A stretch of DNA of 64,000 nucleotides from the NCBI GenBank assembly GCA_025786725.1, contig JAHLTZ010000002.1, forward strand, positions 62,001 to 126,000, written 5' to 3'. The stretch comes from Syncephalis fuscata S228. Taxonomy: Eukaryota > Fungi > Zoopagomycota. The translations under genes and the position numbers were made by a program. A model generated the notes under the pieces. That model saw nothing but the letters and a program-made list of their open reading frames with translations, made no database searches and was not told the DNA's origin. Positions 9,393-51,311 of the stretch are shown here, piece after piece (the stretch's first letter is position 1; every line of letters begins with the position of its first letter).

Positions 9393-10567
9393 ATGAAATT
9401 AATTAATGCTATCGCCGCTACTACGCTCATGCTAATATCGGTTACGCAAGTCATGCCTGTTGATGGGATGTTAAGTTTATCCAATTCTGAGTCCATTAGC
9501 AAGTGTCAACTCCAATTTATCCATGTTATTTGCTAACTTTAGTATTCATATAGACTTCATGGGTTATAAAAACAACGACCCAGAGAGTCCATTTACCATA
9601 TATGGTATCCAGTTTACAGATATTTCATATCAAGTTAAAGGTGTTCACTATATCAAAGGAACACAACATAGCCAGCCCATTACACTTGCGTGTGGATCAG
9701 ATCCAAATCCAAACAATCCCGCTTTTCAAGTATACAAGGTAAATTTTACGTAGTATTATCTATTCAAGAACTAACCAGCATTATTGGCAACAGGATTTAA
9801 TACTAAATCCCCAATTATCTAAAAACAACGAGTTTTCAATTGCTATGCCTGAACTCAGTTTCATATTTCCTGGACAAAATAGATGCTATGTCTTACCAGG
9901 TCAGTGTGAAATAACATATAAAGAATTCACTAGAAAATACACCAGGTATGGCAAATTCGGCAGTATTATCTTTTTATAATATTTATAATGCTAACGTTTC
10001 AATTAGTGCAGTGCAAAGTGATATGGAAATGGTATTAAATTTGTGGTGGAATATTGGATCAGGTACAGACTTTTATTGTTTACATTTTAGCTATTAAATT
10101 ATTGTTAGGTCTAATTGCTATAGAAGAAGAGGGATGGCATGCCCAAATGAATTTTAAAGGTAGGTATGAAGTTTATTAATGATGCTTATATTAATTGTAT
10201 TGCTAGATATTTGCATCACTAAGAAGAAAAATGGTAAATATATACCACATTTTTTTTACTTCAATAATGCAATTTCAGCAAAGAAAAAAATTGATTACGA
10301 AACAGATATTATAAGTTTCAGTCTAAATCCCGCTACTTTAGATGCAATTCTTTGGCTTGTTAATGAAGAAGTAAGAATTGAAATACTTTGCAAACTTTTA
10401 GATGATCAATACATAAGAAAAAGAAGAGTTTTGTACAGTGCGAATTGGCTTCATTTTGAATTCGACAACCTAGGTGTAACTGACTGTTTAAGAAAAGCAA
10501 ACAAGCCACTATAGATACATTGGAAAGAATGCTTTTGACTAATAATTCGAAATGGCGTCCTCATTAA
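9393..10567 (+). CDS. Secreted kinase-fold (pseudokinase-like) protein, copy C, 6 exons
   Basis: Signal peptide MKLINAIAATTLMLISVTQVMPVDG; five introns, the first GC-AG at 9499. Spliced product contains GLIAIEEEGWHAQMNFK-DICIT..PHFFYFNNA. One 1-nt deletion near 10503. Confidence 0.7.
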
Positions 10568-11371
10568 TAGCTCATTAAATAAAAGCATGACTTGTTGGGG
10601 CTTAATTCATTTAACTATGTAATATATTATATATATATATCATTTATTTGTCCATTATTAATGTCACTTATTTATTTACTTGTAAAACCATTTAATATAA
10701 TTTGAATAGCAAATAGCAGATATTATATAAAAGTAAACGGTAAAACAAGTTATATCTGCATTTTGTATACTTCAATAATCTAATCTTTTTTATCCATTAG
10801 TTTATAAAACATTATCAATATCGTATGGTCAATCATAATGACTGGACAGACAAATGCTAAATTCAATATAGCGATATATTTTATTAAATTTTAAATAAAT
10901 ATATTAAATTCAGCTTTGACAAATCATTTAGCCATTTGATGGATAGCACATCTGTGTACTTTGTAATTGTCGTTCTACCCTTCTTCACTATAGTTATAGC
11001 TTTAATGCTCCAATGATCAGTAGAGTTCAAGTAAGAACAGTACAAATTAGTATACATAAAGCCAACAGCCATAGTGACCATTGATACTATTAATAAATAA
11101 GATTAGATAGTCAGTATAGATATGCTTTATCTAATTATTCAAAATGCTTATAGTATTATTATTATCTTTTTCTTTCGCTTATAACACATACTAATCATCT
11201 TACTGCTAAATAAAAGTAATAGTAAATTTTATTATTTTATAAATTTAAATGATAAGAAAAGTAAATAAACCAACAAAAAATAAAGTGTAATCAAATAGAT
11301 GGCATGCAATAAAATAAAGTTATAATGGATAATCGATAGATATACTTGTATATAATCATAATAACAAAGAG

Positions 11372-14368
11372 TTAAGAGGTAGCAATATATTTGCCCGATC
11401 GTACTTGCACCGTGGCCGACGAAACAGTAGCATCACTAGTACGTACCAATAGACTGGATACACCCAGTGGGCCTATAGACTGAGCCGATGTCGCATCATC
11501 TATTGTTGTCGTCAAACCCGCCACGCTATAGCTTGCTTCGAATCGCGCAGCTACTGGTGGCAAACTAGACTCGTCAATAATCGTCGCGTTAGTCGTTAAT
11601 CGAGCAAGAATACGACGTGGAGCATCATCACCCGCCCGAATGTCCTCGTCAATCTGCCATAATAGTCGAGCGTGGTTCTCGTCCCAATAGCCAGAGGGAC
11701 GTGCTTGTACTTGAACAACGCCACCGCCCAACTCATTAAGAGGCAGCAAGAAGGAGAGCTGTCGTAGATCAGCGGCTGCTAATCGTGTACAGGCTGGATT
11801 GCGTCGATACTGAATGGCCAGTGATGCACCATTAGATTCAATACGCCATGCAGCTTGTATAAGTAGTGGTGTGTCTTCAGCTGTTGTTGTCGTTATTGAA
11901 TGTACCTGCCATGTGGCTATCGGCAATGGCTGATCTGTAATCTGACAGGTTAGTGCAGTCAGTGCATCAAATGCATCTGAAACAGCCATCGTAGCATTTG
12001 TATCAATTAATGACAGTTCATTTAAAGGCTGTTCATTACTATCTGATAGCAATAGTGTACACATCTGATCTGAAGATGTAGTAGTATGGGTCGATTGAAC
12101 ACTTAATTCACCATAAATTATGGTTTTTACTGGCCAGCCAGTAGATTCACAAATAGCATGAATAGTTTCTGTTATAGTCAGCCCAATCGTTGGCTTAACA
12201 GGGGCAGTTATTGAAGGGGCAAATGATGGCGATGCTGGTTGAATAGCTATAGCCGGTGCAAATGGATTATACTGATTTCTAACCGATTCACTTGTAGGCG
12301 GTGTAGCAACGGTTATAGATGCCGCAAATGGATTGCGTTCACTAAGTGGGCTAGACGATCCTGAAATACTAGGCGGCATGACCGTTAAGCTATCATCTTC
12401 GTTCTCGTCCATTGGCTCGGCTACATAAACAACTGGTTGCTGCTGCGACAAAGGCGACGAAGCTGATGCTGGCAAGAAAGACGTAGAAAGCGATGACGAT
12501 GATTTCTTGCCGGTCGTTTCCAATGATAGACTACGGGCTACTTGTTGGAATTTAGATGGATCTACCGCGGCTGATGCACGTCGCACATCTGGATCCCGTG
12601 TAGAACTGCGTCGTGTAATACGTCGTTGTAATCCTAGTGATCGTTCAACTTTCAATGGTGAATGGCCACCCTGTTGTACCGCTATAGCTGATAATCGAGG
12701 TGATTCAGGTGCATCCACCGGCGACGATGAAGTCGAACAGTCATGAGTCGAATTAGAACTGGTATACATAGAAGCAGGTCTAATTGTTATCGTTCTTATT
12801 AACATGAATACCGTTAATAAAGATGTTGATTAACTTACCGAACGGTCGATATGTTCAATCGTTGAGGAATTACTTTAATACTAGACATTACAGTATATTC
12901 TTCAGTTACCGCCTTATTGCCGTTGACAGACTCTGCTACACCATCATGCTGATTATCATTACTAACATTACTAGCATCGCTGGGCTCTTCAAGATGTGCT
13001 CGGGCCACCATAGAACTATTAGTATGGCTATCGTTAGCGCGTGAAGGTACAGCCGATATTGGCACTGTATCAACTTTAGTCGTTGTAACTGCTGCATTGA
13101 TACCACCATGCCATGTAGCAGGTGCTGTTATACTTGATAGCGAATGAGTAGATTCTATATTAGGTTGATTTTCATGCTGAGATGATCTATTGGTACCAAG
13201 TGTAGCCGTATCAACCTCCTGTACTTCAGATAGTGGACGGCCCTACATACTACTAATTAATATCGATAAGTATTAACCGACAAGTTACTTACATCGGTCG
13301 TTGCATTCAATGCACCACGACGTAGATCTGAACGAGAAGGTGTCGCCGATTTGGGATGAGCAGATATGCTATCACTCGATAGACTCATACGTGGTGAACA
13401 GCCATTAGGCAGTGACAGCGTTGATCGCTGTATATTTGTCGAAGATGCTGCAGTAGATTGGTCGTTTAAATAGACACCACGACCACTTAAACTACTGCCA
13501 TTCACAAACTGATTTGAATCGGTGCCGATTGAAGAGGCACATACACGAACAATGTCCTCTTCTGGATCAAAATCAAATGCTATAGCAAGTGTACGATCAA
13601 GTAATTCGGTATAGGCATGTGCACAATCAGATTGTAATGTTTGCAGTCGAGTTACTGCCTCTTTTAAATTATTCAATCGAACACGGTCAACAGACTCGTA
13701 GCGTACCAATAATGTACTGGCATCACGCTGCCATTGAGCACGTAACTCATCAATTTTAACCGTAAGATCTGCAACACGGCGTTCATTGTTATTAGCTGAT
13801 TTAATAATGGACAATCCTGTATTTGAGCCTTTACGAGCCTTAATCAGCTTATTATCCTTCTCTTCCAGCTCTTTGGCCACCTTTTGGGCGGTGACATCAA
13901 GTTGACGAATCGATTGCCAGCTATCATCGTTGGCAATACATTGCCGTATAGGCTTTTCTACCTGATCAATAATATTTTCGGCAAATTTTAGATGGAGTGT
14001 GGCCGTTTCCTCCCACTCTGACTTGATACGGCCCCATAATTCGCCAAACATGCCTAGAAACTCGGCGTCAACAACAGCACGACCCCGCCGCACTAATCGC
14101 TGTATTTGTTTGGCATATTGTTCTTCAACGGCGGCGCTACAACATTACCATTAGTAAATACTTGGACGACAAGCCAATTACTCACCGTTCACGCATTAAA
14201 GCAGCCACGTCCTCGTGAAGTATACGGGCCTTTTTAAATCGACCAGAAAAGTGGTCCAGTACTTGTTTTGGCCGTCGACCTTCCTATTATTACGGCCATA
14301 TACTAATTATTAACTAATCGCAAGTTTTTTGCAATTGTACTTGCCAGAAAAACCGTTTCGTATACCAT
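11372..14368 (-). CDS. SYP1: Muniscin Syp1/FCHo: F-BAR plus C-terminal mu-homology domain
   Basis: Spliced N-terminus MVYETVFL|EGRRPKQVLDHFSGRFKKARILHEDVAALMRE|RAAVEEQYAKQ. C-terminal muHD (GLTITETIHA..IYGEL; PLLIQAAWR; VRSGKYIA). Confidence 0.85.
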
Positions 14369-15641
14369 CGTGAGTAATTAGAGGCAAATGCCGTGTATAG
14401 ACCAGCGTAAAGAAAAGATAACTCGCGGCAAACTAGTTGTTGTTGTATGAAGCAATGCAGGGAAAAGTATGTAACAGTAGAAACAAGTCGGTGCCTGTGG
14501 CAAGAGAGTGGCGGAGATACAGCCACAAACCACACCAATGGCTGTTGTTGCACGCACTACGACACAACACTACAAACAACAGGCTGAGTTATGCGCAATA
14601 AAAGAGCCCAAGCCTGGCACAGTTTCAGATAAATTAGTTAGAAATGCTAGAATGACTACTATAATCGGGAAAGATTGAAAAGAAAGGTGAGGACAAGGTT
14701 GCGTGCACGCAATTCTACCAGGTGGAGTGCTTTGACACGTGTAGATAAGTGTGTAAGTTCATGTGGTGTTGAACGAGGAAGTTAAGCCACAATAATAACC
14801 ATAACAACCACAGTAACAACAATACTACACATAATAAACATAATACTAATAATGATATTGTATATAATAATGGCCACAATACGAAAAATGTTAATAACAG
14901 TGACCATCAATAGCCGCAATATTGATAATATAAATACTATTAATAGAAATATTAATAGAAATATGAATAATAAATGGATCATATTGCTGTGGACTATTGA
15001 GTTTGAATAGAAAGAGAAAGCTATTTCACTTTATGTCTCCTATCCTTAAACTGAAGGACAAAAAATTCATAACTTGAATAATAAACCGTTGATCAGTTTT
15101 TGCTACTAAGAAGTGGTATTTGTTCAAGTAGCGCTATGTCAACTCCGATTGAATCAATCACAAATGAGCCAGTCCGCGCTATTTTCAATATCGAAATAAA
15201 TAAATAGTATTCCATGCTACTTACAATAAAATATAATAAATAGATAAATGTTGATTCATATTATTGTTGCTGTAAAGTATTCAAAGCATTATAATTTGAT
15301 ATTTAATGTCACTCACCATCCAGTCCCATGTTTAGTAGAATAATAAATGTGTAGTTCAGTCAAGTAAAGGATATCGATTTTGGTCTTTTGACACTGAATC
15401 ACATGAGTCTATTTATTAATTAATATATGAAAGTTATTGTACGCCGACTCCCACATTTTTATTTACTCATTTCACCGCCCTTTTCTTATTACTATCTTAT
15501 TGTTCTATTCAAAAATATATTATATAATAGTGTTGAATATAAAATATAAATAGCATGTGTATTTGAACATCAATAAAAACACTATTCAATTTCTAGTCTT
15601 TATTTCTTTTATTTACATCAACACCTGTTCAAGTAACCTCA

Positions 15642-15946
15642 ACGGCATGCCGTATCTTCTGGTTACAACTGTCGCCACAAGATCTTCCTGATGAAGACAC
15701 TCAGCCTACCATTATTGCATATGGTGAGGCCGATTTGCTTCATCAATGGTCGGCAAATAATATGCGTCTACCAAGTTGATATTAAAAATGCTCAAGAAAA
15801 TGGCGAACACCAGAAACGCTAGTTGTCTTACCTTTTGTCATCATAAACAAGTATTTTACATTGCAAATATGCCCAAAATGCAACAGTAGAATAATAAAAA
15901 ATAAAAGAGACAATTCAGATGTAATAAAACCCATGTTGTACGTAGC

Positions 15947-15977
<31 letters not shown>

Positions 15978-16080
15978 GAATGACACAGAATCGCGCTCAA
16001 TGGCGTCTGTTAATAGTCACTCAATCTTTCTACACATGGACAACAACAATAACAATGATCAACCTCAAATGTTTCAATGA
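15642..16080 (+). pseudogene. Degenerate Fanzor/TnpB-like RuvC plus zinc-finger C-terminal fragment (IS200/605-derived)
   Basis: Across frameshifts it reads PTIIAYGEAD(F)ASSMVGK*YASTKLILKML..FVIINKYFTLQICPKC..HVVR..NR(D)SMASVNSHSIFLHM..DQPQMFQ*, matching Fanzor1 motif order. Confidence 0.72.
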
Positions 16081-16350
16081 AATCAAATAGTATGTTACAT
16101 TGTTTATTTGAATGTTTAGAATAGCAGTTACTAATGCAATGTTCTGTTACATTTAATTCTACTTTATGAAAATGATAATGGACAATAATATTGCTTTAAT
16201 ATTTATTGCGAATGATGATTTAAACACAAATCGATTAATTGAATCATTACAATGGATTGCGTAAAAAGATTTATTGCCCTGGGGGAATCAAAGTAAACAG
16301 CCAGAAAGAGCGATAAGAATAATAAACGCTCTTCATTTTGACCCTTTACT

Positions 16351-17078
16351 ATGAATTCCATGTTAATTGGACCAGGTCTAGATCCTGGTAAGCGTCTAAC
16401 ACCGCTACGTGATCTACGACCTATGATGCGTAATATCCACTGTGAAGTGATTGTCCTAGAAAAAGGTAGGCTAGCTATACAGAATAGATTGCCATAATAG
16501 CTAATTGGCAATCACTACAAGTTCGACCTGAACTTGGTATGCGTGATGGCAAGGTGCTTAATACATTCTGGGTGGCCGATCGTACTGGCTCAGTCGTACT
16601 GGATATATGGGGAGAACCAGGCACTATGGTACGCGTCGGTGATATTCTACGCATCACTAACGGGTAAGTAGTGTATACACACAATGTATAATACATTTAT
16701 TAATACATTGTTGTTAATAGAGAGGCCAAATTATTCCGTGAAAAGCTTCATTTGGCACCCGCAAGATCTTATGGACGTGTACGTCGTATTGGACAGTAAG
16801 TAGATGAAGTCTTTGTTATCTGATCACTTATGGTTGATTATTGAATATACGACAACAACCACGCCAATAGAGATACATTTCATTTCAATGAAACTTACAA
16901 TGTAAGCGCTTTTGACTGGACTACTAACCCAGACCGGCCGGGGCCTATGGTAAGTAGCATATAAGGCCAGCCTACTAGAGTCTACATGCCCATGTTAATC
17001 TATAAGGTCCATATCATACGATATCATTAGGTGCCAGGCTCAAAAAGTACCGACTATACGCAAGCTGCTGGACGCTAA
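16351..17078 (+). CDS. NABP: SOSS complex subunit B (hSSB1/NABP-like OB-fold ssDNA-binding protein), 5 exons
   Basis: Spliced LRDLRPMMRNIHCEVIVLEK..RDGKVLNTFWVADRTGSVVLDIWGEPGTMVRVGDILRITNG..IGQ..NVS follows the SSB1 OB-fold pattern. Missed by the ORF track. Confidence 0.85.
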
Positions 17079-17580
17079 TGCATATCTACTTGCCAACCAA
17101 TCAGTTCATCAGTAACAGCGTAACAGGTGACTCGGTACAAATCTATTTTTACGTTTTTCTCTGTTCTGTTTTATAAATCACTATTTCCATCACATCACAC
17201 CAGTTAATTCCTCAAAAACATTACTATTTTTGTGCCACTTTGTGTCCTAGTACTATTCTTGTCTTTGTCAATTTGGTCCGAATATGCCAAGAATAAGGTG
17301 CTATTGTTTATTAAAAAGACTATCGAATAGATGGGCTAGATAGCCAAGTGTTGCTTATCGGCGATGGCCGCCTTTACTTGGTTTTAATTTTATTGCAATA
17401 AAAGTTTTATGTTATTGACAACGTGCTAACATTAGAATAGTCGCTGTCGCCTTTTGTCTAAGGTGGCTGTATCGTTTCATTCACGAGGCCAACCTTTTCT
17501 TTTCTAAAGGCGTGTGTACCTCTTCCGTTTGCTTCACCATTAATAATAATAGTAATAATAGCAGTCGTAACAACAACAAC

Positions 17581-17617
17581 AACAATGGATCTGATCAACA
17601 ATGGATCTGATCAACAA
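17581..17617. repeat. Perfect 16-bp direct tandem duplication (aacaatggatctgatc)x2
   Basis: Read directly, next to an AAC microsatellite. Confidence 0.9.
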
Positions 17618-18024
17618 AGAAACGTAACGTTATTTAGAGATGTTCATACCTAAATTCGGATAACACTAAGGAATGAACGCATAATACTTGGCGATAGTTA
17701 TTTATAGTAACATTTGTATCACTGACCACACCTATTTATTCATGTCGCATATTCACTATAACAAATAACCGGATTGATTGATTAAATATAATTAGGCCAT
17801 TGTCGGGTGCCCCTTTTTTACTCCTTTGCTGTCTCTCTCTCTCTGCATCACGTTGGTTATATAAATTTGCTTTTTTGCCGACTGCTTATTTATTTTTATC
17901 GTATTCGCTAAACTGCTAACCTTTTATATTTAAACACTGGCCATTGATTGATAGTCCACCAACTAGCTATCACCGCCACCATATCTATATCACTTCTACT
18001 CCACTACTACATATCCATAACAAC

Positions 18025-19125: not shown

Positions 19126-19586
19126 GCCTTTACAAAATACTTGTAATCACTTTATTTCCTTCCTTCATCTTTACTTTTTATCTTTTGCATGTACTTTTAC
19201 TTCTATATTAATTGACCAATACGCATCACTCGTCACTTTTGCGATATTCGCTTTTGATTGCGTTTTTGGTTTAACCGTTATCACACACTAAACACTGCAT
19301 TCATTTAGTGTTCATTCTATATCTAATCTAATTAAATATAAATTACTCATACTATTGGTGCACCGTTGTATCAGTTGATCCTGACTAAAGAACAAAGAAC
19401 ATGAATGCAAGTCGTCCATTGCTTATTGGTCCGTTATTATTAGCAACACCATAAAGGCTAGAGGAAAGAAGGAGACGATAGGCAGATAGATGTTAATGAG
19501 TGCCTTTTGATCAATTGCTGACGCGTTGGCATTAATTTATTAATAAATTGCATAACATTTACAAAGATGCTCACTGGATAGTTCAC

Positions 19587-22239: not shown

Positions 22240-22450
22240 AGCGTCCTAACAACCGAAAGAATCAGAAAGAAATGAGGATAGAGGACGTATTATCCAGACA
22301 ACCAGCTCTGGAAGTAACAGCGCAGCAACAACGTCAGCAGTAATAATAATAGTAATTAGTAATACTATTACAGTAACAATAACCAACAAAAGATAGACAA
22401 AAAAGAACTGTTCAAGGTTCAGGAAAAGTAGTTACAATGAAACGGCCTTA

Positions 22451-22460
22451 GTCACGTGAC
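22451..22460. promoter_or_regulatory. Palindromic E-box GTCACGTGAC (bHLH site) 212 bp upstream of the phosphate transporter ATG
   Basis: Perfect 10-bp palindrome in the divergent PHO91/FCP1 intergenic region. Confidence 0.55.
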
Positions 22461-26000: not shown

Positions 26001-26158
26001 AATTGGATGACTTTAGTGAATTGGATGAGCTAGAACAAGAATTACAAAAAGCTATGGAAAGCGATGACGAAGCATCATCATCATCATCATCGTCAGATAA
26101 TAATAATAATAATAACGATGATAAAGATGCCAATGCAGGGGACAAGAATGAAGAATAG
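23010..26158 (+). CDS. FCP1: RNA polymerase II CTD phosphatase Fcp1 (FCPH plus BRCT)
   Basis: CSH....GMCAYCG, LSLIVDLDQTIVHA (DxDxT), ELHIYTAGSRSYA, RILSRDESG, IIDDRADVW, BRCT VTHLVAAK.GTSKV, acidic tail. Many introns. Confidence 0.93.
23087..23150 (+). other. U12-type (minor spliceosome) GT-AG intron
   Basis: 5' splice site GTATCCTTT, branch site CCTTGAC at 23126-23132, AG at 23149-50. Splicing keeps the FCP1 frame. Confidence 0.8.
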
Positions 26159-28339: not shown

Positions 28340-29964
28340 GACGTATTATATGAAAAAACCTGCATTTGTAATAGTTATATTGTACTAAAATCATTCAACA
28401 TAACACTATTTTATACATTAATAAATTAGATAAATTAGTGATTACAAAAATGCGGCGATAATAAGTATGTCGTTGGTATCTAGATCTTCACAAAAAAACC
28501 ACATTCTTTGCAATATCTATTTGATATTAAATCCATAGTTCATTGTAGCATATTGCATGTGTATTTATTCTATTGTCTGTACATAAGATATACACTGTAC
28601 ATTAAAGATTAAGAAAAAAATAAACGATATTTACTAATTATTAATATAAACTGTAACCATATGAAAACCAATATCGATATATAAATGAATATTGTATAGT
28701 TGTGATCTATGCCTGTATTGTTCTCGTTGATAGTATATATATAATAAAAAGCAGTTTTCTACAAACTCATGTACCGTTAATTCTAAGGATAATAGTTTTA
28801 GAAAAAATATGCTTTGATATAGTTATCATTGAAAACATGACTTGGTGTAAATATTGTGTTTTTGATATTATCGTATTGTATTTGTTGTTAATCCAACATC
28901 TAATTGCAATCTATATCAGTCTTTTCTACATTATAATTCATTTTTTGTTAATATGCAATAAAGCAATTTGATTATATGTTATAATCTCTATAGGTAGTTT
29001 AATGCCATAATGTTCCTCATGTAATATAATCTAACGCAATAATGTAATTACTACAATGTCTAGTAAAACAGTATGCTAGCAATACAGCTAATAAGCAGTA
29101 CCATACAATCGCTATATTCATCCCATCTATTCTATCTATTATGGCAATAGTGTTATATGTTTATTTATACTATTAATAATTTGATGACAGTGTCAGTTAT
29201 GCGTTAATGTCATACAAGCCGTTTAGAGGAAAATAGTATACAAAAGAGTAATGATAATAAAACGCAGCCTTATAAACATGGTTTTACACTAGTTATTAAC
29301 AATTAACAGTCGAGTTATCATTTTATAAATTAAGTATTAAGCATTGACTACTATTGGCAATAGTTATATGTTGGCAGATGGTATATAAAACTAAGTATAT
29401 TAAAATTCACAAATAGTATGTGACAATTTACTGTATTCTATGAAACCATTGAATTGATGGTTAATTGTAGTGTATATTATTAAAACTTGATGTTCAAAAC
29501 TACAGCACTTCTATGAGCTATAATTAGTACCAACAAATAAGGCGATCTCGATTGCGGCATTTACTGACAAATTTATAGTTTTTAATATCTTCGCTTCAAG
29601 AATGGCAACTACGCAAAAATGGGATTATCATAATCAGTTGCATTCCTTTATCATACCACTCAATATACATACATGCATAGAAATGCTACTTTAAAGCATT
29701 TACATTCTCAAGCTACGTATCGAAGTGTTAAGATTCACTGTTTTTAGTTTATTCCACGTGCTTTTTCCACGATTTTTTACTCATAAACGTGCATACTGCA
29801 TTCGTTCAACCTCATAATAAATATGGCGACTATTACACGATGCATTTTGATATAAATATCTAGATTTATAGCACATCTATTGTTTACCCATCACATCATA
29901 TTTCTTACGTATTAGCCTAATGAAAATCCATTTTTTTAGTTAACGACTAAACCTTACACAAAAA

Positions 29965-31086
29965 ATGTTTACGATAAAATCCATTTTCGCTATCATCGTT
30001 ACTGTGTCATGACAGTATCGGTTATTCAAGCCATGCCTGTTAATGAAATGCCAAGCTTACCTGAGTCTGAACCCATTGGTAAACTCTACTCCAATTTATC
30101 CATGCTATTTGCTAACTTTAGTATTTATGTAGAATTTATGAGTTATAAAAACACGACTCAGAAAGTCCATTTACCATATATGATATTCAGTTTACTGACA
30201 ATCCATATGAAGTTAAAGGTGTTCACTATATCAAAGGAACGCAGCATAGCCAGCCCATTACACTTGTATTTGAACCAAATTCGAATACAAGCAATCCCGC
30301 TTTTCAAGTATACAAGGTAATTTTATATAAATCACCTTTGCAAAAACTAACAAGTATCGCCATCAACAGGATCTAATGCTAGATCCCAAATCGGTTAAGA
30401 GCGATAGGTTTTTGGTTCCTGTACCTGAAAAAAGGCTCATAATTAAAGGAAATGTGTGCTATATTATACCAGGCCAATGTGAAATACATATAAGGATTTT
30501 GCCCAAAAATACACCAGGTATAGCGAGCTTAACAAAGTTAATTTTACAAAATATACACTATTCTGACTTTATTTAATTTTAGCGGTGCGCGTCTTGTACA
30601 ACTTTTATGGCAGAATATTGGATCAGGTACAATTTTTATTATTTATATAATATTTATTAAAGCACTATTAGGTCTTGATGCTATAAAAGAAGCGGGGTGG
30701 TATTCTCATATGGATTTTAAGGGTGAGTATGACATCATGGCGAGTATTTATGTTGATGATACTGCTAGATATTTGCATGACCAGTGACAGCAATAATAAC
30801 ACCATTCCAAGTTTTTTCAATTTCAATAATGCTATTCCAGTAGGAAAAGGACTTGTTAATATTGAAGATACAAATAATTTTGTTGTAAACAGCAGCCTTC
30901 TCCTTGTTTCCAAGTACGTGAAATCCGGAATAATGCAACACATTATGGGGCCAAATGGAAAGAATACGAATGGCGCTCTCTAAGGCCCCATTTAACTCAC
31001 CAGCTATGTCTAACTGGAGTCATGGCCCATTATATAACTTTAAATATGCACTCAATACAATGCTATTAAAAGAAACTGAAAACTAA
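29965..31086 (+). CDS. Secreted kinase-fold (pseudokinase-like) protein, copy A, 6 exons
   Basis: Signal peptide MFTIKSIFAIIVTVFMTVSVIQA; GLDAIKEAGWYSHMDFK-DICMT..PSFFNFNNA. Several 1-nt deletions are corrected by the right-arm copy. Confidence 0.7.
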
Positions 31087-31686
31087 AAGCTTTACAACTA
31101 ATCAATAGCCCATTAAATAAACTCATAGCATATTATAGCTTAATTACCACAACTGTGTATATATTTTGTGTAGCATGTATTTGTTTATTAATTAGGAATT
31201 TGTGTTAAGTTTACTGCATTTCTATGAGCTATAGTTGGCATCAACAAAAAAGGTAGTTGCAATCCGCGGCATTTACGAACGAATCTGCAATTTCTTCTGA
31301 TAGTAATGTTTCAAAATAGAAATACGCAAACCGGTATTACCATAACGGATTACATCTTTCATCATGTCGCTCAAAGTATATAAATAGAAATGAGAATGCT
31401 GCTTCAAAACATTTGCATTTTCAAATTCATGTTGAGATGTTTGAGGTATTTGCTTTTAGTTTACTCTGGGTGTTTTTCAAGATTTCTTACCTAAAACCTG
31501 TATACTGTATTTGTCCAACCCCAAGTAAGTATGTCGACTATTACATGATGCGTTTTACTATAAATATTTGTATTTTGCGTATTTATTCGTCTAGCCACCA
31601 CATCATACTTCATTTCTTACGTACTGCAATTATAAATAATAAATCGGTTTAATCAACAATTGAACCTTGGCAAAGCCATACCTACA

Positions 31687-32874
31687 ATGAAATCTATTAT
31701 TGCTATCGTAGCCACTACATTTATGCTAGTATTAGCCACACAAGTTACATATTCTAATGCCATGCCAGGCTCCTTCAACTCCAAGCCCGAGCCCAAGCTC
31801 ATTGGTAAACGTCTACGCCAATTTATCCATGCTATTTGCTAACTTTAGTATTTATGTAGAATTTATGCGTTATAAAAACAGCGACTCAGAAAGTCCATTT
31901 ACCATATATGATATTCAGTTTACTGACAATCCATATGAAGTTAAAGGTGTTCACTATATCAAAGGAACGCAATATAATCAACCCATTACACTTACATGTG
32001 GATCAGATCCAAATCCAAACATAATGCTTTTCAAGTATACGAGGCAAGTTTTATGTAGCAATAGATATGCAAAAACTAACAAGTATCATCATCAACAGGA
32101 TTTAAAGGCACATTCTTCGCTATTTAGCAGCACAGGTTTTCTGTTGCTGTACCTAAAGGCGGTTTTATAATTCCTGGACAAATTAGATGCTATGTCTTAC
32201 CAGGCCAATGTGAACAGACATATAAACAATTTGCTGAGAATCCCCTCAGGTATGACTAATTCAATAGTATTACTTCCATATAATATCTATAATGCTAACT
32301 TTTCAACTAGTGCAATGCAGCTTGATATGAAAAAGATATTGGATTTATGGCGTAATATTGGTCAGGTACAAATCTTTATTGTTTATATGGTATATATTAA
32401 ATTATTGTTAGGTCTAGATGCTATAGGAAAAACAGGATGGCACGTCCACAAGAATCTTCAAAGTAAGTATAGCGTTTATTAATAATGCTTATATTGATTG
32501 TATTGCTAGATATTTGCATCACCAAGAAGAAAGATGGTAAATATATGCCACAGTTTTTTAATTTCGATAATGCAATTTCAGCAAAGAAAGAGCTTGATTA
32601 CGAAACAGAGATTATGCATTCCAGTCTAAACCGTATTAATATAAAAACAATTCTTCAGCTTGTTCCTGATGAAGTAAAAATTGAAATATTTTGCAAGCTT
32701 ACAGATGATGCATGCATAAGAAAAACGAGGATTTTATACAAACCAAGCTGGATTGATTCTAGACTTTATGATCTAAATGGAAATGAATGTTTAAAAAAAG
32801 CAGATGCAGTCACTATATATTCATTAGAAAAAATGCTTTTAACTAATAATCCAAACTGGCATCCTCATCAATAA
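31687..32874 (+). CDS. Secreted kinase-fold (pseudokinase-like) protein, copy B, 6 exons
   Basis: Signal peptide MKSIIAIVATTFMLVLATQVTYSNA; GLDAIGKTGWHVHKNLQ-xICIT..PQFFNFDNA. Same intron positions as copies A and C. Confidence 0.7.
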
Positions 32875-34755
32875 TTCATTAAATAAATTCATAGTATGTT
32901 ATGATACAATTATTTAGTTATGTGATATACTTTATGTATTATGTATTTGTTTATTAAATACTAATATTGTATAGCTATTTACTTGTAAATGCTACTTGGT
33001 ATGATTTAAACAGTAAATGACTAATATTCCATAAATTCAGGCTGTAAAACAATTAGTTATAAATATTATATATATTTTAGTATTTCTGATTCTTTAGTCA
33101 TCAATGAATGAAGTATTATAAATACCGCCTGGTTATAATTAGCAATTAAACTGATAAATGCTAAATTCAGCATAACAGTATTTCTTACTAGATGTTATTT
33201 AGATAAATAGCTGCGTTTTCTAAATTCCACATCTACAATTTTGTTAATATTTGCTTTAAATTACCGCCAAATTTATTAATTTTAACGGTTAGTGTAATTA
33301 CACTAAAAAAACAGAAATAACAAATAGTTCTCATAGTAGCTATCAAAATGGTTTGCCTATGGTTTATCATATTAAGCTTTTGTTTCCTGTGATTCGTGTG
33401 ATGTATTTACTGCCATTAAGTCATTATTAATCCAAACTACATCTTATTAGTGATTATGATTATAATTTTATTTATATACAACTAAATAGCAACTTACAGA
33501 TTTGCTTATGTAATGCAGAATTGCCAGTTATAACATTCGTGTATTCTTTACATTATCATTTCTTGCAAGCCGATATTGTTCTATTTTAAACAATCAAATT
33601 GATATTTGTTTGTTCTAATCTATACTCTTTCGATTCTTTAGCTACTAGTCTATCGATATGCGTGTAATTTAATTTAAAATTTAAATGTATTTGATGGTAC
33701 ACATTGCAACCAACAATACATTGCCTAATCTATATTATTTTTCATGCTTTATAGTATCTATACACGTAAATAGTTCACGCAATACAGACAATTGACTGTT
33801 GTTATTATTATTCCACTTTATCTCTGCTAATAGCCATTGCTGCTTACTATACACGACACATATATTATTTATTTCAATCTTTACGTTTAGTTAGTCAACA
33901 CTATTTCAAGCTACTATCAATAGAAGACTGATTAGCTGCAATAATTAATAGTTTAATTCTTTTACAGCAACCTTGTTTGTAACATGCAAGTTTATGAATT
34001 CTATAAAAGCCACTATAATATTCTCATAATATAGCAATTTTTACAGTGATGAGTTGATAGTAATGCAACCAAGAAGCTATTGAGCAAGCAACAGTGCCGT
34101 ATGCTTCAATCAAAGTTAGCAATTTTGCAATAGTCGAAATGCCAGTGGATGTTGAGTAAACGAGTTAGGGAAAGAAATAATTATATTTTTAAGTAATGAA
34201 AATGGTTAACAAAAAAATAAGATTAAAGAAAAGCAATGCAAGATAATAATGTAAATAGTGTTTGTACTTAACTAGTAGTCATCCAAATATTAGCACTATC
34301 TAGGTAACATATATGAAGTGTACAAGTATATGCAATGGATATACGCTATCAAGTGTAAAGAAAGAGTAGTGATGTAGATTATATGTCGTGTTGTTAATAC
34401 AAGTGAGTTTATAATAATGATGTAATTTGACATCAAAACTACTCATTATCATAGAGCATGCAATAAATGCCATTTGCCATTTCCATAGAACATACTGCCA
34501 ATGGAATAATAAATTTAGTAATAAGAATAAATGGCAATGAATAAAGGAATGCCATTATCTACTGTATCACTTTAGTAGTTTATAAAGCTGCTAAAGTAAT
34601 ACAAAATAAGTCAATTAAATGGTGATCTACAATTAAAAAACAATAGCTAAAAATATTATTCATAACGCTCAGAACAGATAAGTTGATAAATCCTGACTTT
34701 CTGCCATATATATCTTAACCTTGTGTCGCTTTTTGTCTTCTTCTGATTAGCAACT

Positions 34756-39885: not shown

Positions 39886-40030
39886 CACGCGTTGTTTTTT
39901 ATCGTGATTTTTTTTATTTGTTTGTTTCCCTCTAATTCTCAACTTTATTTGAATACTAAAGTATGACATTATCTAATGCCAGTGTGAGTTGTGCAATCTA
40001 CCACTAGCGAGTGTTTATTGGTTCTAATGT

Positions 40031-42800: not shown

Positions 42801-42926
42801 TCCAGTTTAACAATGTAATGTTAATATAATAATTGCAAATAAATAAATAAATATTAATTTTATTACTAGTAATTTATATTAAATTAAATACACGATTTTA
42901 CACCACCTATCTTTACTATTACTATT

Positions 42927-43933
42927 ATGTTCCGTCTCCAATGTCTAAGCGGTATTCGTACGGGTTTGACTCGTGTGACAACACCGCGTAGTCTACTAGG
43001 TCCACTGGGTCTATTGACAGAATCTAAACTACAATCAATGTTACAGCCTGTTCTACGTCAACGCTCATTTCAAACAACACCGTCTTCTACGATACTTACT
43101 AAATACCATAGCTCGATTACACGAGCATTCTCTTCTTCTTCCTATTCTACTACTACTACTACTACTCGCTCGTTATGTGCTTATCCATTGAAACGCGTTG
43201 GATTCACTTCTTTTCTACGATGCACTCAACCTTTACTATTAGGCAATACTATAGATTCACCGCTATCCTATGCTATACCATTAACGTCGCGTAGCTATAC
43301 TACTACACCACCAGGTCAGCCACCTAATCACCAACAGCATCGTATACGTACCTCGCTATTCTATGCTGTATCGGTGGCGGTTCTACTGCTTGGCCTTAGT
43401 TATGCCGCCGTACCTCTTTACCGTCTCTATTGCAGTGTTATGGGCGCCGGTGGCAAAGCGGAAGTAGCCTCCGATAAATTCCAACCGGAAAATCTCGTAC
43501 CGCGACGCGATGCACGACGTATCCGTGTCACGTTTAACTCGGATGTAAGTCAAGCGCTGAATTGGTCGTTTAAGCCTCAACAAAAAGAAGTCTACGTCTA
43601 TCCGGGCGAGACGGCTCTCGTGTTCTACACGGCCAAGAATAACTCGGACAAGGATATTATTGGCATATCAACGTACAATGTCACACCGAGTAAGGCTGGT
43701 GCTTATTTCAACAAGATCCAATGCTTTTGCTTTGAGGAACAGCTACTACGGGCCGGTGAACAAGTTGATATGCCTATATTCTTCTTTTTAGATCCAGATT
43801 TTAGTGGTAAGTTCAACTCTGTCTGTCTTTTATTAACAGCTAATAACAACAACAACGTATAGATCAACCACAAATGCGTGATACTGATAGCGTCACATTA
43901 TCCTACACTTTCTTCAATGCTAAACAGTGTTAA
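42927..43933 (+). CDS. COX11: Cytochrome c oxidase copper chaperone Cox11
   Basis: SYAAVPLYRLYC, W.FKPQQ..V.VYPGETAL, YFNKIQCFCFEEQ. Last exon VTLSYTFF follows an intron. Confidence 0.96.
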
Positions 43934-43975
43934 ACTACTATTTTATTAATAAAGTCTATATACACATGCGATGGT

Positions 43976-44926
43976 TTAAGATGCCGAAGCACTATTAATA
44001 CGCTGCTCTAGCTTATTAAACTCATCCTGTGATACCTTCTCTTCTTCGTCGTATTCTTGTTCAACACCTTCAACTTCAGGCACGTAATGCTTCAACATAT
44101 TCTCAATGCCATTCTTAAGTGTAATGACTGACGAATCGCATGTACGACAAGCACCTTTAAGTTTCAAGCGAACAATACCTTCAGGTGTAAATCCACGATA
44201 TTCAACATCGCCACCATCCTCTTGAATCGATGGACGAATACGTGTATCTAGCAGTTCTTTAATCATTTTAACTGCTTCAGGGTCATCATCTAGAATGGCC
44301 GTGTCTGATGGTGCCTGTTCATCAGTTAGAATGGGTTGACCCGAAGCATAAAAGTCCATAATGGCCGAATAAATATCGGGTTTCATTAACTGCCAAGTGG
44401 CCAATGGATCTTTGGTCACTGTAATAAAATCCTGACCTATTATTATATTATATAATTAATATATGATTACTAATCAATATCACGATAACTACTATACTTA
44501 CCTAGAAATACATGTTTGACACCGTCAATTTGAAAGAGCAGTTTGGCGAGTGGTGAGGCAAATCCTTCACGAGCAGTTACAAATTCAATAGGTGACATGC
44601 CTTCAGCGAGAACAGTTTCACCAGGAAAGAATTTAATAGCATCTTCATTGGGCGTTACTCTATTTTGAATAAACATTGTACGCACTAATATACTGTGTAA
44701 GCTATCAAATAGAATAGTCCTAGTATTGCTGTAGTTGTAGTTAATTACCTTGTGATTGACCTACTCGAATAGATCGCGCCATAGGCACTGATCGCATCAG
44801 TGGCGTGATTGGCATACGACTATAACAACGAGCAGATACCATACGAGATGGTATTGGTTGAGATAGACAAAGACGTGTAGCTGTAAAAGCCGTACGGCCT
44901 ACCAATGTTCTTATTAATGAACGCAT
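43976..44926 (-). CDS. NFU1: Mitochondrial Fe-S cluster carrier Nfu1
   Basis: Presequence, MFIQ...[41 protein letters not shown] (CxxC). Confidence 0.95.
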
Positions 44927-45120
44927 CGTTATTGTAAGTTGTAGTAAAAGAGTAAGCAGCTACACTTGTTAGAATACAAACGATGTCATTGAACAATAAT
45001 TAAGATGAAATATCAAATTATTTTATAGATTGATTTTGATGATTTCTCATCAAATTTACTCTATTCTTTGCTGTTTTTAGTTCCAATTACTGTTGCCATT
45101 AGCAAGTAGTATTTGCAGGT

Positions 45121-46439
45121 ATGGTACGTTTGAACGGAGATCAAGAACGGGGTATGCCACTATTAAGCGTGGGCTTTCTTAGTATATAGCTAACTGATCA
45201 ATACTTGTCATGGCATCATATCCATACTGTTAAAACACTAGAGTCGTCACCCAAGACTATTATGGGTAGGTATAAGATTGAATTGTTTAATAATATATAT
45301 ATATATATATAATACTATGTATATGTAGAACTTACAGAAGCCGGTATACAAGCATTAAGCTCCTATGCAGAAGGAAAGCAAGATTCCAAGTAAGCAATAG
45401 TATAAAATAGCTATTTATTTAGTAACAATTATTATTATTATGTTATTATGTTATCCAGTCTTTCCTGGGGACAATTACGCGTTGAAATAAGAAATGGAAT
45501 CAATAACGTACGTGTCATTTAATTGACATGTCAATGAATAGACATCAGACTATAGATTATAATAACCATACTAATATATTAATAATATGTTAATAGAATG
45601 TTACACTATTAACTACCATGGCTATTGAGCAGGAATCTATCAAATCACGGCGCAATCTACGAAGTGTCGATAAACCAATCGAGGAAATACAAGGAGAGAG
45701 AAAGAATAATGAGCTGTATATTGGCTCATCAGACTCATATTTAAAGAAAATGAAGGCAATCATACTACAAATACTGCTAATGTGGATTCAACTAGAACAG
45801 ATACAGAAATGATTTGTATAATGATGAATCAACACCTCCAGCCACTGCTGCACTGTTTCAAATGGATTCACCAATCTATGCAGAAGATATTGCCGATGAG
45901 ATAGAGGAAATGATTATTCCTATTAGACAAGTTGTTATGGACTGTTTAGATAATAACTTTGAAAGGTAATTATATAGAATAGCAATAGTAACAATAGTAA
46001 CAATAGGATGGAATACTTTTGGTATTAGTGGGCCACCATTTACGATTCAACGACTGGCTGAATTGGTTCTTAAACCAACAGAACACTATAATGAACCAGA
46101 TAAATACTTACGGGCAGTTCAACGGGTAATTCATTGCACATTTAGTTAATAGTAGTTATTGATATGAGTTGAATACTAGATGGTTATGGTAACCTCAACG
46201 CCATTTGACTATCCACCTGTATCGACGGAGAATGGAACTGGACAATTGGGTGAATTTAGTACACCTATAGGATTAACTACTATTGGATCGACATCATCTT
46301 CGGATAATAAGTGGAAATGGACGTGCCAACAACGGTAGTCCATGCTATTCATGAAGACACGCCACTAACAGAGGAAACAGCATCGATGTCACAGGATAGC
46401 AATAGTAGCGATATAGTTAAAGATGAGCCGATAACTTAG
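45121..46439 (+). CDS. PPP4R2: Protein phosphatase 4 regulatory subunit 2 (PPP4R2/Psy4)
   Basis: Exon at about 46029-46126 encodes PPFTIQRLAELVLKPTEHYNEPDKYLRAVQR, followed by MVMVTST. The 5' end is approximate. Confidence 0.8.
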
Positions 46440-46574
46440 ACACAACAGTATAAATAAGAAGTGTAGTTAAAATCTCCATAATTCTATTGCTATTAATTAA
46501 TTACTACAGCTACTATTTGTGTTTTAAAAATGATCAATTGTTTAATGCGCAAATAAATGAATAACAATGCAAAA

Positions 46575-47200
46575 TCACAATTTAAACTCGATTTCTGCAT
46601 TAAGACAAGCAATTGGTGTATCGTCACCTGAGAATACTCGTGCTTTTACATGGAATTTGCCCTATTAATTAGTTTAATAAAATATAAAAGTTTAATTAAC
46701 ATAATTCAAACAACTTCGTATTTACTTACGGGTGGAATCTCCTTAGGTAGATCGATACTGCGTTCAAGTGTAATTTTGCCTGGTCCAAGGGGACATTCAA
46801 CGTCGGCTTGGGTGATTTCTTTGCATAAATCAAACTTTTTATTAATTAGTTTGATAAAGCCATACTTGACCTCGACTTGAGCATAGCTGCCTTCGACCAC
46901 TGCTTCAGAGAATGTTCCCGTAGCATTGATGTGAAGTGTTTGACCACGACCTGGTGGATCAGGATTAAGTTGTATATCTTCGATTTGCAGAATATAGGAA
47001 GAGTCGCTACAGTCATAGAGCGACTCGCCATACTTTTTGCCCAAATCAGGTTGAACAGAAGAGAATAAGCCGCTGCCTCCATCATCTTCATTGTCGCCCA
47101 ACTGCCATAGCACACGTTCAATCGACGAGGCCTCCAGTAATAGTGCTTGTGAGAACAATACTGCGGCAAACCCGCCTAGTGAAAGGTAGAATAGCTTCAT
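46575..47200 (-). CDS. NPC2: ML-domain sterol/lipid transfer protein (Npc2 / PG-PI transfer protein)
   Basis: Signal peptide; LYDC..I.LNPDPPGRGQTL, VKYGFIKLI..FDLC..CPL..LPKEIPP|GKFHV..IACL. Confidence 0.93.
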
Positions 47201-48397
47201 GTTGAGAGAATAGTCAATATGAATGCAGCCTAAATAAAGCACAAGACTACAAATAGCCGTAGCAATGTGGTATGGACAGTGGAATCACGGTAGAGATAGA
47301 AGGTAAAAGTTAAAGGTATAAAGCAAGGATAGAGCGAGTGATGCGAGGGATAAGTTGAAAGGATTAGAAAAGAATAGGAGTTGCGTGTAAACGTGAGTGG
47401 GAGTGTATTGAGTGTATTACTAGTATCAGCAGTCCGTTTCTAACGAATTGATAGGAAAAAGAGGGGGCAATTCACTGGCACAAGTCACGTGTGCACTTGT
47501 TCGTCGTTGGGGAACATTCGATGTTTATGGCTCAGAATACTGAACATACATCGTATTTCTGGCTAACACCTACGATGACTTTTACAAACTATTAACTATA
47601 ATGAGTTAACACAGGGATTTAATAAGTAGAGCAGATATATTATTGTTTGCATGTGTGTCTCTACTATCTTTGGATTCAGTAGACTATATTGTAGTGTTTT
47701 GACTTTTATGTAATAATACCGTAATTGTCTAGCTTACAGTGGTGTTTTAGATATAAATGTAAACATGGAATAGAATAGTATTATGTGCAGCGTTTAATAC
47801 ACATTGGATAAATGCTTAGTAATGGTTATATATGCTATGATCAGTTGAATACTAATATGTATATCGACTATTTTGTCAAGACAATAAAATATTAATAATG
47901 CTTAGAAGAAACAGCCGTTGTTTTAAATAGTTAATGCAATGGCCATTATAGTTATTCAGCTCATTGCTAGACTATTATATGCTGATTATATATAGTGTTA
48001 TACATATAATTTAATACAAAGGATAGGTAGAGCTATAACGTGCGACTTGGAAGATGTAACTAGTTATTTATCATTCATAAGAGATATTGCTATATTGAAT
48101 TTAACATTTATCACTTTAGTAGTTGGCCATGATAACCAGTGGATATGGATAACGCTTTATATATTGATGAATAAAGGAAAGGACTAAATAGATTGAAAGA
48201 CACGAAATGGGTGTAACAGCTTGTTTTACAGCCTGACTTTATGGAATATTAGTCATTTACTGTTTAAATCATACCAAGTAGCATTTACAAGTAAATAGCT
48301 ATACAATATTAGCGCTTAATAAACAAATACATAATACATAAAATATATCACATAACTAAGACAATTGATTATAACATACTATGAATTATTTAATGAA

Positions 48398-49582
48398 TTA
48401 TTGATGAGAATGCCAGTTTGGATTATTAGTTAAAAGCATTTTTTCTAATGAATATATAGTGACTGCATCTGCTTTTTTTAAACATTCATTTCCATTTAGA
48501 TCATAAAGTCTAGAATCAATCCAGCTTGGTTTGTATAAAATCCTCGTTTTTCTTGTGTATGCATCATCTGTAAGCTTGCAAAATATTTCGATTTTTACTT
48601 CATCAGGAACAAGCTGAAGAATTGTTTTTATATTAATACGGTTTAGACTGGAACGCATAATCTCTGTTTCGTAATCAAGCTCTTTCTTTGCTGAAATTGC
48701 ATTATCGAATTAAAAAACTGTGGCGTATATTTACCATCTTTTTTCTTGGTGATGCAAATATCTAGCGATACAATCAATATAAGCATTATTAATAAACGCT
48801 ATACTTACTTTGAAGATTCTTGTGGACGTGCCATCCTGTTTTTCCTATAGCATCTAGACCTAATAATAATTTAATATATACCATATAAAAATAAGATTTG
48901 TACCTGACCCAATATTACGCCATAAATCCAATATCTTTTTCATATCAAGCTGCATTGCACTAGTTGAAAAGTTAGCATTATAGATATTATATGGAAGTAA
49001 TACTATTGAATTAGTCATACCTGAGGGGATTCTCAGCAAATTGTTTATATGTCTGTTCACATTGGCCTGGTAAGACATAGCATCTAATTTGTCCAGGAAT
49101 TATAAAACCGCCTTTAGGTACAGCAACAGAAAACTGTCGCTGTTAAATAGCGAAGAATGTGCCTTTAAATCCTGTTGATGATGATACTTGTTAGTTTTTG
49201 CATATCTATTGCTATATAAAACTTGCCTCGTATACTTGAAAAGCATTATTGTTTGGATTTGGATCTGATCCACACGCAAGTGTAATGGGTTGATTATATT
49301 GCGTTCCTTTGATATAGTGAACACCTTTAACTTCATATGGATTGTCAGTAAACTGAATATCATATATGGTAAATGGACTTTCTGAGTCGCTGTTTTTATA
49401 ACGCATAAATTCTACATAAATACTAAAGTCAGCAAATAACATGGATAAATTGGCGTAGACGTTTACCAATGAGCTTGGGCTCGGGCTTGGAGTTGAAGGA
49501 GCCTGGCATGCATTAGAATATGTAACTTGTGTGGCTAATACTAGCATAAATGTAGTGGCTACGATAGCAATAATGATTTCAT
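48398..49582 (-). CDS. Secreted kinase-fold (pseudokinase-like) protein, copy B'
   Basis: Inverted copy of 31687-32874 with the same exon structure. Confidence 0.7.
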
Positions 49583-50183
49583 TGTAGGTATGGCTTTGCC
49601 AAGGTTCAATTGTTGATTAAACCGATGTATTATTTATAATTTCAGTACGTAAGAAATGAAGTATGATGTGGTGGCTAGACGAATAAATACGCAAAATACA
49701 AATATTTATAGTAAAACGCATCGTGTAATAGTCGACATACTTACTGTGGGTTGGACAAATACAGTATACAGGTTTTAGGTAAGAAATCTTGAAAAACACC
49801 CAGAGTAAACTAAAAGCAAATACCTCAAACATCTCAACATGAATTTGAAAATGCAAATGTTTTGAAGCAGCATTCTCATTTCTATTTATATACTTTGAGC
49901 GACATGATGAAAGATGTAATCCGTTATGGTAATACCGGTTTGCGTATTTCTATTTTGAAACATTACTATCAGAAGAAATTGCAGATTCGTTCGTAAATGC
50001 CGCGGATTGCAACTACCTTTTTTGTTGATACCAACTATAGCTCATAGAAATGCAGTAAACTTAAACACAAATTCCTAATTAATAAACAAATACATGCTAC
50101 ACAAAATATATACACAGTTGTGGTAATTAAGCTATAATATGCTATGAGTTTATTTAATGGGCTATTGATTAGTTGTAAAGCTT

Positions 50184-51311
50184 TTAGTTTTCAGTTTCTT
50201 TTAATAGCATTGTATTGAGTGCATATTTAAAGTTATATAATGGGCCATGACTCCAGTTAGACATAGCTGGTGAGTTAAATGGGGCCTTAAGAGAGCGCCA
50301 TTCGTATTCTTTTCCATTTGGCCCCATAATGTGTTGCATTATTCCGGATTTCACGTACTTGGAAACAAGGAGAAGGCTGCTGTTTACAACAAAATTATTT
50401 GTATCTTCAATATTAACAAGTCCTTTTCCTACTGGAATAGCATTATTGAAATTGAAAAAACTTGGAATGGTGTTATTATTGTTGTCACTGGTCATGCAAA
50501 TATCTAGCAGTATCATCAATATAAATACTCGCCATGAATGTCATACTCACCCTTAAAATCCATATGAGAATACCACCCCGCTTCTTTTATAGCATCAAGA
50601 CCTAATAGTGATTTAATAAATATTATATAAATAATAAAATTGTACCTGATCCAATATTCTGCCATAAAAGTTGTACAAGACGCGCACCGCTAAAATTAAA
50701 TAAAGTCAGAATAGTGTATATTTTGTAAAATTAACTTTGTTAAGCTCGCTATACCTGGTGTATTTTTGGGCAAAATCCTTATATGTCATTTCACATTGGC
50801 CTGGTATAATATAGCACACATTTCCTTTAATTATGAGCCTTTTTTCAGGTACAGGAACCAAAAACCTATCGCTCTTAACCGATTTGGGATCTAGCATTAA
50901 ATCCTGTTGATGGCGATACTTGTTAGTTTTTGCAAAGGTGATTTATATAAAATTACCTTGTATACTTGAAAAGCGGGATTGTTTGTATTCGAATTTGGTT
51001 CACATACAAGTGTAATGGGCTGGCTATGCTGCGTTCCTTTGATATAGTGAACACCTTTAACTTCATATGGATTGTCAGTAAACTGAATATCATATATGGT
51101 AAATGGACTTTCTGAGTCGTTGTTTTTATAACTCATAAATTCTACATAAATACTAAAGTTAGCAAATAACATGGGTAAATTGGCGTAGACGTTTACCAAT
51201 GGGTTCGGACTCAGGTAAGCTTGGCATTTCATTAACAGGCATGGCTTGAATAACCGATACTGTCATGAACACAGTAACGATGATAGCGAAAATGGATTTT
51301 ATCGTAAACAT
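50184..51311 (-). CDS. Secreted kinase-fold (pseudokinase-like) protein, copy A'
   Basis: Inverted copy of 29965-31086; carries the bases missing in the left copy. Confidence 0.72.

Follow-up and report, generated by a model that had tools for sequence, protein, structure and literature searches.

What do the five related loci in a 64,000-nucleotide window of the mycoparasitic fungus Syncephalis fuscata S228 encode (assembly GCA_025786725.1, contig JAHLTZ010000002.1, positions 62,001 to 126,000; the window is this whole stretch), and what might their products do for the fungus? The loci, called C (9393, plus strand), A (29965, plus strand), B (31687, plus strand), B' (49582, minus strand) and A' (51311, minus strand) after their first positions, had been proposed, by a model that saw only the letters and their open reading frames (the sequence-only reading), to encode a family of secreted kinase-fold proteins with degenerate catalytic motifs. 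As set out below, profile comparisons and predicted structures show a kinase fold, and the residues needed for canonical catalysis are missing from it. We consider it somewhat probable (about 0.6) that the products are secreted, disulfide-stabilised dead-kinase binding scaffolds that act at the parasite-host interface and belong to a family turning over by duplication and decay.

Kinase fold and active site

The connection to protein kinases was found through outlying members of the family. P0047, named "kinase-like domain-containing protein" by its source, scored 50.2 bits against the Pfam Pkinase model and P0029 scored 33.6 bits, the cut-off being 31.7; P0043 and P0034 gave weak Pkinase scores. 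P0047 could be aligned with CDPK1 through the catalytic loop and the DFG, APE and DxWSxG regions. When the clade to which the window genes belong (the window clade) was compared with the outlying clade by hhalign, the two matched with a probability of 98.5% and an E value of 2.3e-15 over 158 columns, which span from the first strands of the N-terminal lobe (N-lobe) to the DFG position. Membership of the window clade in the Pkinase family is therefore only transitive, since P0047 and P0029 pass the Pfam cut-off and hhalign joins them to the clade. The nearest kinases detectable by sequence, again by way of P0047, were CAMK/ULK-like Ser/Thr kinases. Other Pfam families matched by exons or paralogs, among them PilP, PRANC and DUF5341, were at chance level only and were rejected.

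An AlphaFold2 model of P0006, the product of A', was built from a 33-sequence family alignment and had a mean predicted local distance difference test score (pLDDT) of 84.5 and a predicted template modelling score of 0.79. Foldseek returned at least 500 matches to this model in the PDB at E ≤ 0.001 (best E value, 2e-7), and among the 50 best matches, which were the ones listed, all 50 were protein kinases or kinase-fold domains. Re-alignment with VIA placed residues 50 to 276 of the model on residues 33 to 293 of Pim1, through both lobes, with a Z score of 13.2 and a root mean square deviation of 3.8 Å over 196 residues. A control model of the B/C-type paralog P0004, built from an alignment without any Pfam-positive family member, again had its match list filled by kinases; its N-lobe and catalytic core had pLDDT values of 84 to 95, and its C-terminal lobe (C-lobe) was weaker. 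Taken together, the profile comparison and the predicted models show that the mature domain is a two-lobed kinase fold descended from a eukaryotic Ser/Thr protein kinase, as had been proposed from the order of its motifs.

The motifs behind that proposal are indeed present: ITLxC, CY[VI]xPGQC and GLxAI..GW, followed by HMDFK, HKNLQ or QMNFK and by NFN, NFD or YFN. We mapped the catalytic positions onto P0006, whose numbering is used here, through the alignment of P0047 with CDPK1 and the hhalign alignment. No GxGxxG loop was found between the first two strands. The beta3 Lys position is occupied by Val, Ala or Thr (Val84 in P0006, just ahead of the invariant Cys85); P0047 keeps a Lys there, directly before the invariant Cys. 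The H-R-D position reads Tyr175-Ser176-His177, with Asp179 at the Lys168 position and Asp182 at the Asn171 position, and the D-F-G position reads Asn199-Phe200-Asn201. Across the gene types, the position of the HRD Asp has His in A and B and Gln in C, the Asn171 position has Asp in A and C and keeps Asn in B, and the position of the DFG Asp has Asn in A and B and Tyr in C. The corresponding catalytic-loop regions are WHAQMNFKDIC in C, WYSHMDFKDIC in A' and WHVHKNLQNIC in B, with the DFG-position triplets YFN, NFN and NFD, respectively. The loss of the beta3 Lys and of the metal-binding Asp of DFG in all gene types, which the sequence-only reading had claimed, was thus confirmed by the residue mapping. 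It had also pointed to the right catalytic-loop regions, but the Asp of HMD, considered as the HRD Asp, had to be rejected: compared with P0029 and canonical kinases, the family has lost one residue from the loop, and in the profile alignment it is His (Gln in C) that falls at the catalytic position. P0047 is likewise a pseudokinase, with HNA and NFE in place of the canonical motifs.

A predicted kinase fold from which the catalytic residues are missing is what defines a pseudokinase, and as mapped here canonical phosphate transfer would be beyond these proteins. Could they still be active enzymes, outside the cell or in the host, that use a non-canonical mechanism such as atypical kinase activity or nucleotide transfer? 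Some so-called pseudokinases, SelO and SidJ for example, proved to catalyse other reactions, the fold is complete, and the vicinity of the site still has polar residues (in A', His177, Asp179 and Asp182; in B, the Asn at the Asn171 position). However, the glycine loop, the beta3 Lys, the catalytic Asp and the DFG Asp are all lost, two conserved cysteines lie in the region of the nucleotide cleft, and the site residues differ between paralogs (H/Q, N/Y and D/N), as would not be expected of an active site under conservation. We therefore regard an enzymatic function as very improbable.

Probable secretion, conserved cysteines and proposed role

A signal peptide had been proposed for the products, and a signal-peptide-like N terminus was borne out by a hydrophobic stretch, a small residue at position -1 and the conservation of exon 1. 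In all full-length models, a 12-residue window with a Kyte-Doolittle value of at least 1.9 lies within the first 35 residues, and a hydrophobicity scan of the same models found no later segment that reached the level of a membrane span. After the hydrophobic stretch follow a small-x-Ala site and then Pro (TQA/TP and IQA/MP, the slash marking the putative cleavage point), with a Pro-rich stretch downstream. In the P0006 model, the N-terminal segment is a low-confidence helix (residues 5 to 23) outside the fold. The segment is encoded by an exon of its own, exon 1, which is still 50 to 58% identical in distant paralogs, where the exon order is kept.

Four cysteines of P0006 (C85, C130, C137 and C184) are conserved across members that are only 13 to 20% identical; three are invariant and the fourth is nearly so. 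From the geometry of the kinase fold, C85 (beta3) and C130 (beta5) would lie on neighbouring strands and C137 (hinge) would lie near C184 (beta7). Since beta3 adjoins beta5 and the hinge adjoins beta7, the disulfides C85-C130 and C137-C184 are geometrically plausible, and the two would staple the nucleotide cleft. The proteins of the family are likely to enter the secretory pathway and to be disulfide-bonded. They might go no further, however: an uncleaved signal anchor could keep them at the parasite surface or in the secretory pathway, where they would have a task in the cell wall, the haustorial membrane or the secretory pathway of the parasite itself. The N-terminal helix is the sole hydrophobic span, and conserved cysteines would suit any lumenal or extracellular site. 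We nevertheless consider retention unlikely, in view of the resemblance of the small-x-Ala-Pro sequence to a cleavage site and of the more than 40 fast-diverging, lineage-specific copies, which would be unusual for housekeeping proteins of the secretory pathway.

If the proteins are secreted dead-kinase scaffolds, as we prefer to read them, they would leave the parasite at the haustorium, where it meets the host, and attach to proteins of the host or of the interface. Exon 2, which encodes the conserved N-lobe, would then supply the scaffold, and exon 6, which encodes the fast-diverging C-lobe, the specificity. Copies would arise by local and by inverted duplication and be lost by decay; in the window, C and A' would be usable copies, with A, B and B' broken as assembled. 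The parasitic lifestyle, the lineage-specific expansion, the clustered birth and death of copies and the combination of a constrained scaffold with a variable lobe fit an effector role without proving it.

One to three PPxY or LPxY motifs end the distant members P0021, P0032, P0033, P0037, P0040, P0041, P0042 and P0044 (PPPY..PPPY..PPSY in P0041, for example). PPxY-tailed members lie on other contigs of S. fuscata and S. plumigaleata, and such tails are absent from all five window copies. Motifs of the PPxY type bind WW domains of Rsp5/Nedd4-type ubiquitin ligases, and on a signal-peptide protein such a tail would meet these ligases only in another cell's cytosol. A more specific proposal, which we put forward tentatively and would not ourselves favour, makes the family a fungal counterpart of the rhoptry pseudokinases: more than 40 disulfide-stapled proteins would enter the Mucorales host from haustoria and capture signalling or defence proteins, and the PPxY-tailed members would recruit host ligases of the Rsp5/Nedd4 type.

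Gene layout, family turnover and expression

The window is AT-rich eukaryotic DNA (30 to 45% G+C) with short introns and fungal CTAAC branch sites. tblastn searches of it with the second and sixth exons of the 9393 copy found exactly five paralogous loci, and DNA alignment and exon mapping gave all five a common six-exon layout with five introns at identical positions (Table 1), in agreement with the layout first proposed. The introns of the five loci are 44 to 65 nt long and have CTAAC or CTGAC branch sites; their ends are GT-AG except in intron 1 of C and in intron 2 of B and B', where the donor is GC. In the self-comparison of the window, some 200 to 230 bp upstream of the start codons were conserved to about 75% between the gene types, the same degree as the genes themselves. 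This conserved stretch suggests a common promoter module that would have been copied with each duplication.

Table 1. Coordinates, in the window, of the kinase-fold genes and associated features
Feature	Coordinates	Strand	Remarks
Gene C	9393..10514	+	Unbroken spliced frame; exon borders and frame mapped
Exons of C	9393-9498, 9554-9738, 9794-9945, 10007-10062, 10109-10159, 10207-10514	+	Exon mapping
Gene A	29965..31086	+	Twin of A' in the opposite arm; 1-bp gaps break the frame as assembled
Gene B	31687..32874	+	Frame broken as assembled
Gene B'	48398..49582	-	Twin of B; frame broken as assembled
Gene A'	50184..51311	-	Unbroken spliced frame; product is database protein P0006, 287 aa
Exons of A'	51311-51197, 51141-50957, 50903-50755, 50689-50646, 50601-50551, 50503-50184	-	Exon mapping
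GC-AG introns, GCAAGT donor	9499-9553; 32044-32098; 49172-49226		C intron 1; B intron 2; B' intron 2
Left arm of inverted duplication	28688-33052	+	Holds A and B; blastn self-comparison
Right arm of inverted duplication	48221-52592	-	Holds B' and A'; blastn self-comparison
Conserved upstream stretches	9163-9392, 29741-29964, 31483-31686		With mirrored stretches

Four of the five copies sit in an inverted duplication, so that the five loci represent three gene types rather than five independent genes. The arm with A and B and the arm with B' and A', each about 4.4 kb long and about 15 kb apart, were 98.0% identical over 4384 columns (blastn) and differed by 69 substitutions and about 24 indel events. 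The claim of five spliceable genes holds for the loci and their layout, but the spliced frame stays open throughout in only two copies, C and A'. In A, exons 1, 2, 3 and 6 are interrupted by 1-bp breaks; B is interrupted in this way near the end of exon 2 and in exons 3 and 4, and B' twice in exon 1, once in exon 3 and once in exon 6, immediately ahead of the DFG position. The exon-3 break is common to B and B' and must therefore be older than the duplication or have been copied from arm to arm. An AG lies directly downstream of this break in B (32099-32135) and B' (49135-49171), and the Joint Genome Institute (JGI) model P0002 stays in frame by a shifted splice at the B' break.

Indels of 1 bp make up roughly one in four of the differences between the arms, and in 14 of the 22 single-base indels the base is missing from the plus arm. 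Simple homopolymer error does not explain them, because only 8 of the 22 lie in runs of at least 3 bases; the excess may stem from a poor-quality consensus in the repeat and not from biology. For DNA of S. fuscata, the public runs consist of small contig sets at low depth that probably derive from raw long reads and have indels of their own. At the exon-3 gap of A (place 50787), one DNA contig shows a substitution instead of the gap, and this break may be an assembly error; the remaining breaks are neither supported nor contradicted by the DNA contigs.

The family has at least 42 loci in this genome rather than five. Counted genome-wide (29.4 Mb), a check that the sequence-only reading had itself proposed, exon 2 gave 42 matches, of which 15 were on this contig and 6 had stops. 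Outside the window, the same contig (C112) carries ten more copies at 130 to 149 kb, 212 to 279 kb and 915 to 970 kb (L002, L005-L008, L012 and L020). Some of these are identical-scoring triplets (243.7, 257.9 and 277.6 kb), which point to more recent segmental duplications. An exhaustive HMMER search of 1.84 billion representative proteins with the window-clade profile found only 45 relatives at E ≤ 0.001, and all 30 that were looked up by name came from S. fuscata or S. plumigaleata, which bears out the proposed origin in a mycoparasite. As far as public data go, the family is large yet confined to Syncephalis.

With a neighbouring paralog as the first query (a natural 227-residue open frame that runs through stop-free introns) and in a second search, nine of nine NCBI proteins were entries of the form "hypothetical protein BDF19DRAFT_... 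[Syncephalis fuscata]". Intronless copies were sought, but none was found; long open frames just read through stop-free introns. Family proteins are about 260 to 330 residues long. The spliced translation of A' and P0006 (287 aa) have the same sequence. Among the JGI models, P0002 is a patched B' with an internal Met start and splices that avoid the breaks, P0003 joins pieces of A to pieces of B, and P0011 is gene C in a truncated, otherwise spliced form, lacking exon 1 perhaps owing to the GC donor of intron 1. For annotation this means that members are filed as hypothetical proteins, with P0011, P0003 and P0002 truncated, fused or mis-spliced.

Pairwise ratios of nonsynonymous to synonymous substitution rates (dN/dS), computed from unbroken exon pieces only, were 0.46 for C versus A', 0.56 for C versus B and 0.79 for A versus B. 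Exon 2, the N-lobe core, was constrained, with a proportion of nonsynonymous differences (pN) of 0.08 and of synonymous differences (pS) of 0.25; in exon 6, the C-lobe, replacement sites changed as fast as silent sites. The introns were about as conserved as synonymous sites. In an RNA-like S. fuscata run, there were contigs with junctions precisely at the positions predicted for introns 2, 3 and 4 (ends GT..AG or GC..AG), which supported the GC-AG junction at the B-type intron 2; loose contig ends agreed with introns 1 and 5, too. These contigs were only 95 to 99% alike and therefore come from close paralogs, one of them traced to a paralog just past the window. Close paralogs are transcribed and spliced as modelled, at appreciable depth.

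Do these data describe a relic, a burst of duplicated kinase-derived genes that is now largely decaying by drift and to which the window copies contribute nothing? The broken frames of three of the five window copies, the stops in 6 of the 42 exon-2 matches and the dN/dS values of 0.46 to 0.79, together with introns conserved about like synonymous sites, would fit such a history. We consider it improbable, however: the four cysteines and the fold core have been kept among members as little as 13 to 20% identical, exon 2 has a pN far below its pS, close paralogs are correctly spliced in transcripts, two window copies are intact, and some breaks, such as the one at place 50787, may be assembly errors.

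Several points weigh against reading the window genes as secreted dead-kinase scaffolds. Pfam searches with single exons of C, A' and B and with seven full paralogs gave no match to a kinase family even at an E value of 10, and a sequence search of the PDB with an eight-member profile found no kinase, the best match being ribosomal uS5 (E = 0.2). The signal peptide was called from hydrophobicity, the small residue at -1 and conservation, and the disulfide pairing is derived from the fold, not from coordinates. Precedents such as SelO and SidJ count here as well. The broken frames of three of five copies and the high dN/dS may mean that some of the family is undergoing decay and not diversification. 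Finally, the spliced transcripts expected for the gene models were seen for close paralogs, but the one RNA-like run, whose contigs cannot show absence, yielded none that was specific to any of the five window copies C, A, A', B and B'.

Comparison with known systems

To our knowledge, next to nothing is known of the molecules by which zoopagomycete mycoparasites act on their host fungi. A literature search for Syncephalis together with pseudokinase or secreted kinase gave nothing relevant, and no paper on the family was found. A genus-restricted family of this kind is a concrete candidate set for the interaction between mycoparasite and host.

The CAMK/ULK-like Ser/Thr kinases of Pfam PF00069 share with the Syncephalis proteins the predicted two-lobed fold over the whole mature protein and, through intermediate Syncephalis proteins, a demonstrable common ancestry. 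In contrast to these kinases, the Syncephalis family lacks the catalytic residues, has the shorter catalytic loop, and adds the signal-peptide-like N terminus and the four conserved cysteines. In the window clade, moreover, the C-lobe is reduced and lacks the APE and DxWSxG motifs, and the Pfam model does not detect the window proteins. The FAM20/Fjx and CotH kinases of the secretory pathway also have a disulfide-stabilised kinase-like fold outside the cytosol. These, however, are atypical kinase folds with Pfam families of their own, whereas the structure matches of the Syncephalis models are canonical eukaryotic protein kinases; neither FAM20/Fjx nor CotH was matched in the Pfam scans of window exons and family proteins. 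Plasmodium FIKK and Toxoplasma WNG are parasite-specific exported or secreted kinases without a canonical glycine loop. They are active, with both aspartates intact, whereas the Syncephalis family has lost both.

A parallel had been drawn with the Toxoplasma ROP5-type pseudokinases. The ROPK proteins, including ROP5, are signal-peptide proteins of kinase fold, many of them catalytically dead, that have expanded in tandem, polymorphic clusters of the parasite genome and act by binding. The likeness lies in the signal-peptide-like N terminus, the dead kinase fold and the lineage-specific expansion in a parasite. A specific affinity was not found: the nearest kinases are CAMK/ULK-like, no ROPK chain was among the 50 best structure matches listed, and neither the arginine-rich amphipathic-helix region by which ROPK proteins attach to membranes nor the ROPK N-terminal extension was seen in the Syncephalis proteins, which are of fungal origin and carry their own conserved cysteine pattern. 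Judged by this comparison, ROP5 is a fair analogy for the Syncephalis family and not a relative. If our preferred reading is true, the family would be an independent case, beside the ROP5-type proteins of Toxoplasma, of a parasite that recast kinases as secreted binding proteins; and if the more specific proposal of a fungal rhoptry counterpart were true, two very distant parasite lineages would independently have made the kinase fold a secreted binding module.

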